Source: Utricularia gibba (taxonomy: Eukaryota > Plantae > Magnoliophyta). Taken from it: a stretch of DNA of 64,000 nt. A program made the position numbers and the translations under genes. Positions 25,842 through 34,600 of the stretch are shown here, piece by piece; the stretch's first letter is position 1; every line of letters starts with the position of its first letter. The notes beneath the pieces are model-generated. The model made no database searches, was not told the origin of the DNA, and saw only the letters and a list, made by a program, of their open reading frames with translations. The DNA is taken from the NCBI GenBank assembly GCA_002189035.1, contig CM007991.1, forward strand, positions 372,001 through 436,000, read 5' to 3'.

Positions 25842-26545
25842 GTTCTCGTTTTAGGTTTACTCGTTAGCATATTGCCATCGATTTCAATTTTTGACAAATA
25901 CGGATTAAACGAAAATCTAATACCCTAAATCGTGTGTCGTGTTTGATAGATTTGTTTATTTTTTTCGAATTACGTTTATTTAATAGATGTGTTCTCTAAT
26001 ACACATGATTTGCAAAACATTTTTAGTAATGTTTTCTAAATTCTTTGCTTGTGGGAGTTTTCTCAATCAATGAAGATTTAGTTTTCTTAATTAAACAAGA
26101 TTTTATCAAACATAATATTATTTTAAATAGATATTTATAAAGCTGACTTAGTAAACATACTTTCAATGCTAACTATTACTAATTTACTTAAAATGAAACT
26201 AGTCTACCGAACATCCATTTTTGAATTTTTATGGATGATGTTTATAATAATATCCATAAAAAAAGTCAAAGTGACTTAAATCGGGTTTATGGGTTGGAAA
26301 TTGGAATGGGCATCTCGTGGTATTCTTTGGTTTTTAATTTTTAAATACAATTTATTATCCAAATTGTCAACGTTTACTTAAACCAAATTGCAACATGCTT
26401 GGAGCACCATGCTTTCTTGCCCTAAAGAGGAAAAATTACAATGAAAAGTAATCGGCACCACTTCTGGGGTTTACGTACTCGGAAAGAAACGAACACCCAA
26501 CACAAATGACCAACGGTGTGAAACTTCGAGTGGGTCACCTGAGTC

Positions 26546-26994
26546 CACGTGCGGAAAATAAAAGTATCAGACCAATGCCACGTGATGAAACAAAATCCAA
26601 GTACCCGCATGCAGGAAAACCGTTTGTACGAATTACGTAATTATAAATATCTCCAGGGGTCCCACACCCTGCTGCGACTCAAGTTGTTGAAAGTATACTT
26701 CATAAAGAAACGTGGACCGTATGTTTTTAGATCACGGTTCACATTAATCTTGAACCTTATTTTCAAGTAGGTAATTTACTGTGGTTTGAGAAGTGGTTAA
26801 GGGTATTTATAGCCTTAATTTGTAGTAAAAAGATGAAAAAGAACCGATGTGGGATGCATATCCATTACAGTAGTAAACCAACAGTTGAAGAGTACGCTTG
26901 AAATTTCTCTGAGTTACCATTCCATCAAGCAACTCCCATCTCGTTCCAATCTCCTTCGCTTCTTCCCATCTCTCTGTCTCTCCCTCTATATATA
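26546..26994 (+). promoter_or_regulatory. DMP promoter: two G-boxes and a TATA-like element
   Basis: CACGTG at 26546 and 26579, further ACGT cores near 26473 and 26711, and a TATATATA tract at about 26986-26994, 40-50 bp before the DMP ATG. Confidence 0.5.
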
Positions 26995-27034
26995 TGCATC
27001 CACAGGACAAGGCATCGTCTCAGTTTGAAAGTTG

Positions 27035-27607
27035 ATGGCCACCGGTGGAAGCCAGGCGGCGTTCAAGGGTCTGAGCAGTCTCTTCACGCATCTTCCGACA
27101 GGAACGGTGTTCCTGTTCCAGTTTCTCAGCCCGGTCCTGACCAACAACGGAGAATGCCGACCGTTTAACAAGATCTTATCCAGCTCTCTGATCATCCTGT
27201 GCAGCATATCCTGCTTGCTCTTCTCCATCTCCGATAGCTACACCGACCCCCAGGGGAATAAGATTTTCGGCGTAGCCACGCGGACCGGGATGTGGCTCGG
27301 CTCCGGCAGTGTAGCCGCGGAGGAGCTGTACGAATATAGACTTAAAATAGGGGATCTGGTGCATGCCATCTTCTCTTTGATTATTTTTGCTACTATCGCG
27401 CTCTTGGACACCAACATGGTGAATTGCTTCTACCCGGGGTTCAAGTCGACGCAGAGCATGCTCGTCGTCGTCATCCCTACCCTCATCGGAGCCATCTCCG
27501 GTGTAGTGTTCGTCATGTTTCCGAACAAGCGCCATCGCCTAAGGTATGTTTCATATTTCGCCGTAGGGTTTCCCCTTTACCTCTGCTTATCAGAAGTATG
27601 CTCTTGA
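27035..27607 (+). CDS. DMP: DMP (DUF679) membrane protein, DMP2-like (unspliced form)
   Basis: LPTGTVFLFQFLSPVLTNNGEC, SDSYTD, YRLKIGDLVHAIFS, LLDTNMVNCFYP, FVMFPNKRH; four hydrophobic segments. True ATG at 27035 (the ORF track starts at TTG 27032). Confidence 0.92.
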   Translation: MATGGSQAAFKGLSSLFTHLPTGTVFLFQFLSPVLTNNGECRPFNKILSSSLIILCSISCLLFSISDSYTDPQGNKIFGVATRTGMWLGSGSVAAEELYEYRLKIGDLVHAIFSLIIFATIALLDTNMVNCFYPGFKSTQSMLVVVIPTLIGAISGVVFVMFPNKRHRLRYVSYFAVGFPLYLCLSEVCS

Positions 27608-27643
27608 TTACCAGTTAAAGTACTTGGAAATGCCCTTTTCAGA

Positions 27644-28156
27644 TTGAAGCCAAGAGCTGGGGGTGTATGGACAGTCGAAAGCGAGGACTTGCCGTCACAA
27701 ATTAGCCCCAAAAAGGAAGAACCTGCACCAGGGCAATGCTTAGGGTTTCTGCAACCAGAGGAAGAAATCACAAGCATCTCATACTTCGTCACGAACTTCC
27801 CCGATCACTTGACTGCCAAGGATCTCTGGATCGTCTTCAGTAGAAACGTCGGTCCCGTCGTGGATGTAACCATCCCCGGAGCCCGGACACGGAGAGGGAC
27901 ACGCTTCGCCTACATTCGGTTCTATGTACGGTCATTAGAAGATGAGCTTGAATGCGCCCGCCGGATTTCCAGTGTGTGGTGGGGGAACTACAAGTTGGTA
28001 GTATATCCGGCGCGTTCACGGGGATCCACTGATCACTATCATCCGTCGTTCATTGCTGCAAGCATGCCTCCGGCGCAGGTGGACGCGGCGACCGGCGGCA
28101 ATGGGAGGTTACTGGAGGGGCCGCTCCAACTGAACGAGCTTCGAGTTGAAAGATGA
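27644..28156 (+). mobile_element. Open ORF encoding an RRM of the plant L1 LINE ORF1 type; possible second exon of the DMP gene
   Basis: SYFVTNFPDHLTAKDLW...VVDVTIP...RRGTRFAYIRF...SVWWGNYKLVV parallels the RNP2/RNP1 pattern of RRM-bearing L1 ORF1 (BNR-type). It has no ATG of its own at the 5' end, is preceded by TTTTCAG (27636-27642), and no ORF2 follows. Confidence 0.7.
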
Positions 28157-28396
28157 TGTTCATTTTTCAGAACAGCTGGAGATTGAAGTCGCCATTACAC
28201 CAATCCTCTAACCACTTCCCACCATTCGTTCATTTGCATTGTTTATTCTTTGTGTGGTGTTATCTTGAACTTGGGTTAGTTGTACAATTTTCTTCTTACT
28301 TAACACAAGATATGTATATATTTTTTATAATGATAAACATTCATTTTCTTCTTACTTAAGACAAGAACTTAATTGAATCGAGACTAGATTTTTATG

Positions 28397-28505
28397 CAAT
28401 CCATGTCACAAAAAGTCAAAAGAATTATAAAGATCATATCATATATCGCAATCCATGTCATAAAAAATCAAAAGAATTATAAATATCATATCATATATCA
28501 CAATC
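28397..28505. repeat. Tandem duplication, 52-bp unit x2
   Basis: CAATCCATGTCA.AAAAA.TCAAAAGAATTATAAA.ATCATATCATATATC at 28397 and 28449. Confidence 0.9.
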
Positions 28506-29113
28506 AATATTATTTAGAATTGAATAAATAATAAAATATTCACTACATGTTTTAAAAAATTGTATACTTTTTTTTTCTCAAATTTTGTAATTATGACTAG
28601 ATATATCAAATTTTATTTAAAAAAAGTTTTTGCTAATAAAAAATAGTAAATTGTTCAAGTAAATTGAATACCAATCATTGAAATTATTAAATAATGTATG
28701 ATGTATAAACTATCAATTGATATGAATGTAAGGATACAGTATATTTTATGATTTAAATTAATATAAGTGGTTAGTTAGTACAACATAAACTATGACAATT
28801 TGTGTCAGATGGAAAATATTACTAGGTATATTACGATCCTATATTTACTAAGCAGGAGAATATTTATAAAGAATTGAGAGTAAGATTTAACACTGATTCC
28901 TCGCACTCTTATTTATTAATAATTCATAAATGGTACTTTGTCGAGTAGTTCTATTGAAGAACATCTAATTTATTTGAAACGTTTTTCGATTCCAAATTGT
29001 CCCGAATGCGACATATGATATGACATTTACATCTCTTTTTTTATTACTTTTGTTGATAATCTTTTTGTAAAAACATATGATCACTTCTATTCTCTTGTTG
29101 ATTACATTGGGGA

Positions 29114-29700: not shown

Positions 29701-30605
29701 ATTAGGGACGTAGTATATCGCTATACCAACTTTCTAAACTCTTCCAAAAAAAAAAAGAAACTCAATCTCCTTACTATTTTATATATCAATCAAACATATT
29801 TCATATCATCCATATATTTTTTTATTTTATCTATATATTTCTATTAAAAAATTAATAATATATGAAACTAAATGAACCCCTGGCTCCCAACCAATGAACG
29901 TGGCCGTTTTGATTTCGTGGCTGTGAATAACGCAGAAAATCAATTTTAGGCTACATGAAATTGTGTTAACTTAAAGGTGAGGTCCTCGGTCCCCCACAAC
30001 TTTTCCCAAACCTGCATCTCTACGGACTCGCCACGATGATTGATGCGTGTCCGTGTCTAAGACTCTACGTCCGTGTCGAAGCCTCTGGGATGCTGCTTGT
30101 TTAGTGTCAATCATACCCTCTTTTCTTACCAAGAAAAGTTTTGGGTGGACTCCAAGGGTAGCAAGAATCCAGACCCCCACGTCTCTGTCTAGATTATCAT
30201 ACTTGGTAACTGAAGGATGTTTTGAACCCGGAGCAGCCGCGTATCCCGGGTTGCAGCGCCGGGTAAAGATCCGATCACACCCAGTTTGCTTATCCAGCTA
30301 TGGTTAATGCGTCGAGTGTGGTGTAAGAAACAACCCTGAGTTGCTGTTGTTTTAGTGGAAATCACCTGGTATCTGGTCTGGTCTGCTTGTCTGATGCACG
30401 GAAGCTCATGTAGTCTGCCTGTCACGCATTCCCATTCCGCTCCTGTTGGGCCGACATGCGGCGGTCAAGTTACTGGTTGAGGCTGATGAAGAACCAGGCT
30501 CCCAGTTGACGTGGTTTTTTGAAAGAAAGAGTAGACGGCGTGGCCTCCCCACCAACCAAATTGAAATATGTTTGAATACACAATATCACATTTAAAAATT
30601 AAATT

Positions 30606-31624: not shown

Positions 31625-34600
31625 TCAAGCCGCGGCTTGGGCTGCAGCTAGCCTTGCGATTGGCACCCTGGTATTTCAAAGATCAGATTTTGCGGCGGAG
31701 AGACAAAAGGGTAGTTTGGGGTCGAGTCTTTCTTGTACCTGAACGGGGAGCAGGACACGTAGTCCAGCCCGGCTTCAGCGAAAAAGGCGACCGATGACGG
31801 CTCCCCGCCGTGCTCCCCGCATATGCCGATCTGCCATTTTGCTTCATTAGTTGAATGGATGCCTGTGCAAGTTATGAGCTGAGGGATAACGCACCTTGAG
31901 GTCTGGCCTGGCGGCACGGCCTCGCTCTGCAGCCAACTTGATGAGCTGACCCACTCCTTTCTGATCCAGCACCTGATGATGCATTTCATTTCACCCAGTT
32001 AGCATTTTTCATGTAAGCATGAGTTGAATGGTTTTCGGAGAAGACGAGCCTCAAATGGATCATGCTGGAGGATTCCCTTCGCAAGGTATATGGGAAGAAA
32101 TTTTCCAACATCATCTCTGCTGTATCCAAAGGTCATCTGAGTGAGATCATTCGTCCCGAAGGAGAAGAACTCTGCTTCCTTGGCGATCTGCGCAGGTGGT
32201 TAGATGTAAGCTTCACCCAGAAATCATGATGCTGTGTGTGTGCTAGTTTACCTCATCGGCAACTAAAGCAGCTCTGGGAATTTCAATCATGGTTCCCACT
32301 TTGTAGGTGATGGTCACCCCTGTTTCGGAGAATACCTTCTTGGCAACCTCATGAATCAGGCTCACCTGGTGACTTAGTTCCTGGAAACAGAGCATTTACC
32401 AGATTAATTTGGAAGCGAAAAGAGAGTGTGATTCTAGGAAGACATGCCTGAGGAGTTCCGATGAGAGGAACCATGATCTCTGGAAGGACGGTGATCCCCT
32501 GCTGAGTCAAAGAGATGGCTGCCTGGAATATAGCCAGGACCTGCATTTGTGTGAGTTCCGGGTATGATATTCCGAGGCGGCAGCCGCGGAAACCGAGCAT
32601 CGGATTCACTTCGGAAAGTTTTTCGATTCTCATGTATACATCATCCTCGTTCATTCCGGTATCCTCTGTCACTTGTTTCACGATCTGTTCGATGTCTCCC
32701 TCCGGAAGAAATTCGTGAAGCGGCGGATCGAGGAGTCGAATCGTTACCGGAAGGCCATCCATGGCCCGAAAAATGCCTTCGAAGTCTGTTCGTTGGTAAG
32801 GGAGGAGCAAATCTAGGGCTTTTTTCCGCTGCTCTGTGGTGACCGCCATGATCATCTTTCGCACGGCCTTGATCCTCTCATCCGACGCAAAGAACTGAAA
32901 TTCAAAAATGAATACGTTGCATCGAAATTCATTGATTGATGATATTTACGGAAAGGACTTGCCATGTGCTCTGTTCTGCATAATCCGATCCCCTGAGCGC
33001 CATTGCTCCGAGCGATCAGTGCATCTTCAGGGGTATCTGCGTTGGCCATGACTTTGATGCGCCGTATCTCGTCGGCAAACGACATGAAAACCTCAAGGTC
33101 GCCGCTAAGAAGCGGCGGCGACAGAGCTTGTTGCCCGAGGATCACTTCGCCGGTGGAGCCGTTTAGGGAAATCCAGTCACCTTCAGCAATCCTAGTCTGC
33201 GCGACATACGCCACCTTTTCATCCTCGTTGACACGGAGATCCGAGCAACCAGAAACGCAGCATTTTCCCCATCCCCGAGCTACCACCGCCGCGTGGGACG
33301 TCATTCCGCCTCTCGCGGTTAGGATTCCGGCGGCTGCGTGCATCCCTCCGACGTCCTCTGGGCTCGTCTCCGTTCTCACCAAGATCACACTTTTCCCTTG
33401 TGCGTGCCATGCCTCTGCATCTTCAGCGCTGAAAACAACCACTCCCACAGCTGCTCCTGGGGATGCTGGAAGGCCCTTGGCGAGTACAGCATCTTTATAC
33501 GCGGATGGATCTTCGAACTACATGATCAAGTTAAACTCTTACCTTGAACAAACAGGTGTTTTTCTTTAATAAACTAATTAAAGTTTCACTTCACCTGAGG
33601 ATGAAGAAGCTGGTCCAGATGCTGAGGCTCAACCATCTTCACGGCGGAGCGCCGGTCCACCAGCCCTTCGTTAACCATGTCGACAGCAATCTTCACCGCG
33701 CCTTTTCCTGTTCGCTTTCCAGTTCTGCATTGCAGCATATACAGCCTGTTTTCTTGCACCGTGAACTCAATGTCCTGGTTTAGGAAAGCCCAAACGCAGG
33801 TGTGAAACATTTTGCAGTTCTCATTTTTTATGTATTGGGACTCTATGTTTAGACCTTACCATCATCTCTTTGTAGTGTTTCTCTAGAATCACACAGTTCT
33901 CCACCAGTTCCTTGTAGGCTTCCGGCATAGCATCCTTCATTGCTTCCAGTTCCAGCGGCGTCCGGATTCCGGCAACAACATCTTCTCCCTGGAATCATAT
34001 GGAGTTTCTCATCAGGGATGCACAAACTTGGGTTTGAAGAAGAATGACGAAGATGAAAGGACCTGAGCATTGATAAGGAACTCCCCATAGAGCTTCTTCT
34101 CACCAGTGCTGGGATCTCTAGTGAAGAGAACCCCTGTTCCTGAAGAATTCCCCATGTTCCCAAACACCATGGTCTGAATGTTGACAGCAGTTCCCTTCAG
34201 ACCAGTGATTTGGTTTATGCTTCTGTACTTTATCGCCCTGGGACTGTCCCATGAATCAAACACAGCCTTCACTGAGAGTTCTAACTGCTTTTTTGGATCT
34301 ACAAGCAGGATCCACAAATAAGAACGACTGATACAATACCAGTGAAGGGGAGGATCATCTGTAACAGTTACCGGATGGGAACTCTTGACCCGTTGCTTGA
34401 AGATAGACGGCCTTGTATTCTTCCACGAGTTGCTTTAGATCACTGGCTGTGAGTTCAGTGTCCTGCTTCAATCCCAGTGTGATCTTCCTCTTCTCCAGCT
34501 TCTCCTCGAACAGAGAATGAGAAATCCCCATCACCTTCAAAGAAAGGCCATTTGTCAGCTATCACAGATTCCAGCTATTCCATGGCTCATATTTTATGCA

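Follow-up and report, generated by a model that had tools for sequence, protein, structure and literature searches.

New genes are known to arise when a binding domain of transposon origin is joined to a host exon, a route represented by SETMAR and other host-transposase fusions, that is, host-transposon fusion genes formed by exon capture. LINE ORF1 sequences have also been reused by host genomes, as in the mammalian gene L1TD1, which is derived from LINE ORF1. A further example is provided by the EKA effectors of powdery mildews, described as LINE ORF1-derived genes (PMC4641428). The gene considered here lies on the plus strand of a 64-kb stretch of the Utricularia gibba genome (64,000 nucleotides, further referred to as the window; all positions are counted from its first base). 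The data support its assignment to host-transposon fusions, as its transcript unites an exon of the host and one of transposon origin in a single reading frame. Like the SETMAR-type fusions, it has a nucleic-acid-binding domain taken from a transposon and spliced in frame onto a host exon, but the captured domain is the RRM of a LINE ORF1 and not a DNA transposase, its host partner is a probable four-pass membrane protein, and the intron comes from the old 3' coding end of this partner. With L1TD1 and the EKA effectors (PMC4641428) it shares the reuse of LINE ORF1 sequence as a host gene; those genes are stand-alone, whereas the gene in the window is fused to a membrane protein, and this in a plant.

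The host partner belongs to the DMP (DUF679) family. In a survey of 240 DMPs the genes were mostly intronless, and each protein contained a single domain (PMC11477165). In AtDMP1 the N- and C-terminus are both cytosolic, mutation of the GIGY motif to AAAA impairs ER export, and C-terminal eGFP fusions are retained in the ER, the latter being an artefact according to the authors (PMC5383025). Among plant LINEs, DUF4283 is a hallmark of L1 ORF1 proteins, and an N-terminal RRM defines the BNR lineage (PMC5203782). The preliminary description of this DNA had relied on two such generalizations: that DMP genes are normally intronless, which is true for most genes in the 240-DMP survey (PMC11477165), and that RRM-bearing ORF1 occurs in BNR-type L1 LINEs, which is consistent with PMC5203782.

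The gene consists of two in-frame parts, a DMP and then an RRM stretch, separated by a single stop codon. The DMP frame starts with the ATG at 27035, is coding to 27604 and ends with the TGA at 27605–27607 (190 codons). The coding part of exon 1 (27035–27543; 169 codons and 2 bases) covers the whole DMP/DUF679 domain through FPNKRHRL. It is followed by a predicted 99-base intron (27544–27642; 40% GC, 38% T) with GT..AG ends, a splice donor AAG/GTATGT with the G at 27544, a branch-like TTGAT at 27604 and the acceptor CCCTTTTCAG ending at 27642. Removal of the intron creates the codon AG/A and gives a 340-aa product without an internal stop, given that the TGA at 27605–27607 lies inside the intron and is the only in-frame stop before 28154. 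The donor, the branch-like site, the acceptor, the intron length and the 340-aa product joined through AG/A had all been proposed in the preliminary description, and each of them was found at the proposed place and in the proposed frame. Exon 2 opens with a linker of about 40 residues (27643–27763), basic and then acidic (LKPRAGG...PEEE), which is predicted to be disordered (pLDDT 56–63). The RRM core (27764–28018; exon-2 residues 41–125) contains RNP2-like YFVTNFP and RNP1-like RFAYIRF, and the 45-residue C-terminal tail (28019–28156, including the stop TGA at 28154–28156) is again predicted to be disordered (pLDDT 51–69).

Several motifs flank the gene and are reported as positions only. Two G-box motifs CACGTG are located upstream (26546–26551 and 26579–26584), and a TATA-like run TATATATAT (TATATAT) occupies 26987–26995, ending approximately 40 bases 5' of the ATG; both types had been listed in the preliminary description. 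About 370 bases 3' of the stop, AATAAA occurs twice within 28523–28535 as a candidate poly(A) signal.

Downstream of the DMP stop, the DMP frame remains open from 27608 to 28153 (182 codons). Such a stop-free frame occurred in one of 20,000 shuffles of 27608–28153, and each of the other five frames contains 7–8 stops; chance does not account for an opening of this length. The RRM ORF had been described as stop-free and lacking a 5' ATG, which holds, as the frame contains a single ATG 3' of the TGA, at 28064, already past the RRM core. Hence AUG-started translation of the RRM is possible only within the fusion. The GC content of exon 2 is about 55% versus 15–30% in the flanks, and its GC3 is 0.59, below the value of 0.74 for exon 1.

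The DMP part matches DUF679 (Pfam PF05078) with E 9.1e-55 and 185.5 bits (gathering score 25) over profile positions 2–161 of 163. In common with DMP/DUF679 proteins of the AtDMP1 and AtDMP2 type it has a full-length domain in which all invariant columns, including the invariant cysteines and LPTGTVF-FQFL, are kept except for the C-terminal motif. The Kyte-Doolittle scan yielded three strong hydrophobic windows, approximately at residues 44–70, 103–133 and 139–164; the first DMP segment, LPTGTVFLFQFL, is conserved and less hydrophobic. The window gene differs from those of the AtDMP1 and AtDMP2 type in having an intron, a second domain, and RLRL replacing GIGY. The GIGY motif follows FPxxRH in 93 of 106 relatives, whereas the window sequence reads RLRL if spliced and RLRY if the intron is retained, and the donor AG/GTAT is positioned exactly at the G-Y codons of the relatives' GIGY. 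The number of residues after the FPxxRH-adjacent motif is 169 in the window, compared with a median of 14 and a maximum of 47 in the 106 relatives. The form with the retained intron has no GIGY either; it ends with a hydrophobic 21-residue tail, and its 3' UTR would be over 500 bases long. Intron retention had been expected to produce an ordinary DMP of 190 aa: the length and the TGA at 27605 agree with this expectation, but with GIGY missing and the odd hydrophobic tail present the protein would not be ordinary.

The RRM part is marginal when judged by Pfam alone (RRM_1, PF00076: 22.5 bits, the cut-off being 20.7). An exhaustive search with the RRM exon against 1.84 billion representatives produced 927 matches, the best of them with E 3e-18 and 38% identity; over shorter stretches the identity reached at most about 50%. 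Among the best 109 of the 927 matches, RRM_1 was present in 107, DUF4283 in 37, Exo_endo_phos in 7, RVT_1 in 6 and zf-RVT in 4, while DUF679 was present in none. In the family alignment, 8 of 10 invariant or near-invariant positions are identical and the other two are conservative (K to R, F to Y); the likeness to LINE ORF1 starts only at approximately residue 36–40 of exon 2. AlphaFold2 run with the family alignment predicts a canonical strand-helix-strand-strand-helix-strand fold for residues 41–125 (pLDDT 89–97; strands 43–50, 72–76, 87–95 and 119–122, helices 58–68 and 98–109) between disordered flanks. In a Foldseek search the predicted domain matched solved RRMs with target-normalised TM up to 0.75.

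These comparisons support the derivation of the exon-2 RRM from ORF1 of a plant L1 (BNR-like) LINE. The preliminary description had recognized an RRM of the LINE-ORF1 type, and indeed DUF4283, endonuclease and reverse-transcriptase domains are present in proteins among its nearest relatives. The window sequence and plant L1 ORF1 proteins share the RRM signature S-FVTNFPD..DLW..V-DV-IP...RFAFVRF...IW-G-YKL. They differ in that the window has the RRM only, without DUF4283, zinc knuckle, ORF2 or an own start codon. No other likeness to LINE proteins was found across the 64 kb, nor downstream of the gene at E up to 1, and no target-site duplication, flanking direct repeats or poly(A) tail were found around exon 2. 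Judging by sequence, exon 2 is an isolated whole RRM domain and not a LINE element as such.

A protein combining DMP and RRM was not found in large sequence libraries within the scope searched. None of the best 150 of the 927 RRM-exon matches was fused to a DMP, and a word-based search with the RRM exon, restricted to candidates of 94–298 aa, gave zero matches. The best 120 of at least 614 DMP-profile matches, 148–470 residues long, contained PF05078 only and no second domain. Metagenomes scanned for the RRM exon, and for a 27-base pattern spanning the junction, also returned no matches. A second domain is absent from every DMP in the 240-member survey (PMC11477165). Two other observations were made in the course of these searches. 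The top DMP-profile match, a 355-aa protein from Dillenia turbinata (P0257), scored 512 bits, compared with about 385 or less for all others; this score suggests two tandem DMP domains, which would be another kind of extension. A Logan contig of another plant (SRR31865537; L002 2226–3053) carries a DMP2-like gene and, about 1.1 kb downstream of it on the opposite strand, a faint endonuclease-type (LINE ORF2-like) ORF; no RRM was found in this contig.

Splicing of the gene was assessed using contigs of a public run (X1; 2020, the same species label, about 30 million letters of contigs), whose RNA label is a guess and which contains 62% of sampled words. The contigs were aligned on the region 26300–29000 (2.7 kb). 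A 610-base contig joins 27042–27541 to 27641–27750 without a mismatch (500 and 110 bases), and the 99 bases that it skips are exactly the predicted intron with its GT..AG ends. The second contig, of 377 bases, covers 27744–28120, also without a mismatch, so that the two match the window perfectly across 987 bases. Within 26300–29000 the promoter, the intron, the downstream DNA and the stop codon have no X1 coverage. The further acceptor proposed at 28170 in the preliminary description lies beyond the 3' limit of both contigs. That only coding sequence is covered, and that the skip has exact GT..AG ends, looks like a transcriptome and unlike a DNA library. The spliced chimeric message is real and expressed: the junction predicted in the preliminary description, which connects the DMP and the RRM exon in one frame, is bridged by the 610-base contig. 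The support comes from one run out of three in one study, at a low depth of about 5–6, and contigs are uninformative on isoform ratios, transcript ends and strand.

As the kind of X1 is only guessed, one could suppose that the run is in fact DNA and that the skip of 99 bases stems from a processed copy or from an allele with a deletion. We consider this highly improbable. A deletion would have to coincide with GT..AG ends, and a DNA library would have to lose its coverage at the limits of the coding region and leave the promoter, the intron and the downstream DNA empty over 2.7 kb. Moreover, about 30 million letters of contigs is a transcriptome-like amount, and the match is perfect over 987 bases. 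An intron of 99 bases looks ordinary at the locus, since exons of the nearby PPDK gene are spaced by approximately 60–80 bases in places, which suggests short introns.

It is also quite unlikely that the gene is an ordinary DMP terminating at TGA 27605, with the RRM frame being a LINE relic in the 3' UTR and the spliced form a rare by-product. This interpretation would agree with the mostly intronless structure of DMP genes and the single domain in 240 of 240 surveyed members (PMC11477165), as well as with the DMP-like length of the retained-intron frame (190 aa); contigs, in addition, drop rare variants and are silent on ratios. In X1, however, the spliced form is the only one assembled, no contig retains the intron, and the retained form would be a DMP without GIGY and with an atypical tail. 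Its 3' UTR would exceed 500 bases, and in plants transcripts with long 3' UTRs are prone to nonsense-mediated decay.

The DMP nearest to that of the window was found in Genlisea aurea (58% identity). The gene order on the G. aurea contig is DMP-DMP-PPDK, and in the window it is DMP then PPDK, the latter on the minus strand; the shared order of DMP then PPDK identifies the G. aurea DMP as the syntenic counterpart of the window gene. The G. aurea protein ends with FPNRRHGIGYPSDD... and then a stop, and no likeness to the RRM is seen in the 366 bases that precede PPDK, whereas in the window the spacer between the DMP gene and PPDK is about 3.5 kb. The synteny check proposed in the preliminary description has thus located the DMP beside PPDK in G. 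aurea, where the RRM exon is absent. As the species are distant, the exon was either gained after the split or lost in Genlisea. For the pair of DMPs, dN/dS is about 0.12 at a saturated dS of 2.9, and thus shows only long-branch constraint on the DMP part; for PPDK, dS is about 1.4 and likewise saturated.

We give moderate preference to the explanation that this is a lineage-specific chimeric coding gene, in which a normally single-exon DMP2-type gene beside PPDK gained a 3' exon from an L1 ORF1 RRM. A less probable but serious alternative is a recent neutral addition, where a fragment of LINE ORF1 happened to be placed behind the DMP, splice signals were available by chance, and the product, which may be unstable, has no selected function; the gene may even be heading for loss. 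The absence of the exon in G. aurea, the lack of close kin among 1.84 billion representatives, the low depth with one of three runs of the study positive, and the GC3 of exon 2 below that of exon 1 all fit this alternative, and the destruction of the conserved GIGY could mean that the DMP part is drifting. A fragment of no consequence, on the other hand, would hardly keep a 170-codon frame open (one in 20,000 shuffles), retain the signature residues and have a confidently predicted fold. Nor would one expect the rest of the LINE to be deleted while the whole RRM domain is spared, or exon 2 to hold about 55% GC where non-coding DNA has 15–30%.

The origin of the gene may be envisaged as follows. 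The N-terminal RRM of ORF1 in a plant L1 (BNR-like) element would have become the 3' exon of a DMP2-type gene. A new intron would have been carved from the old 3' coding end; its donor lies in the former GIGY codons and the old stop within it. The remainder of the LINE is gone, the RRM is intact and the DMP domain is complete. The mRNA would be translated into a 340-aa four-pass membrane protein. As the two termini of AtDMP1 are cytosolic (PMC5383025), the RRM would be expected on the cytosolic C-terminal tail, after a flexible linker of about 40 residues. By analogy with AtDMP1, where both the GIGY mutation and C-terminal eGFP fusions (the latter judged an artefact by the authors) gave ER retention (PMC5383025), the fusion protein, having lost GIGY, may stay in the ER, and an ER-held fusion would hold RNA at the endomembrane. 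The preliminary description had proposed exaptation of the RRM into a membrane-anchored RNA binder with a putative switch by intron retention; among the X1 contigs none has the intron retained.

A clean and datable case of plant gene birth through exon capture is thereby proposed: an intron carved from a coding end, with its donor in a conserved motif, couples a membrane protein to a retrotransposon RNA-binding domain. Should such a protein be produced and maintained by selection, it would be a natural membrane-tethered RRM and a test case for the role of the conserved DMP C-terminus. A more far-reaching version, that a domesticated ORF1 RRM forms the tail of an ER-retained four-pass protein, has been kept at two loci and tethers RNA to endomembranes, seems unlikely, though worth stating. 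Were it true, the bound RNA could be LINE RNA and the protein a membrane-anchored decoy against retrotransposition. In plants it would be the first LINE ORF1 domain known to have been domesticated in a membrane-anchored form.

Several minor observations concern the DMP genes and their neighbourhood. Next to PPDK, two DMP genes stand in tandem in G. aurea (L001 533–1102 and 2319–2861), and the window has one. In another run (X2), a 199-base contig is about 90% identical to the 5' part of the window DMP (27050–27150), which points to an expressed DMP paralogue elsewhere in Utricularia gibba. The PPDK exons in the window (31625–34299, minus strand) show 83–97% protein identity to G. aurea PPDK. 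A GC-rich island (29900–30600; about 48–52% GC) lies in the AT-rich spacer that separates the chimeric gene from the PPDK 3' end; it is extra DNA, given that the G. aurea spacer is just 366 bases long. In the island no ORF exceeds 86 aa, and comparisons with Rfam and with LINE proteins gave no match there; Rfam likewise gave zero matches in the whole 64-kb window. Just 3' of the gene there is a 52-base tandem duplicate (28396–28499, 94% identical), as well as a pair of inverted-repeat arms (28418–28538 and 28971–29039) that are 71–81% complementary. By sequence, the repeats in 28396–29039 look like a small MITE-like element.
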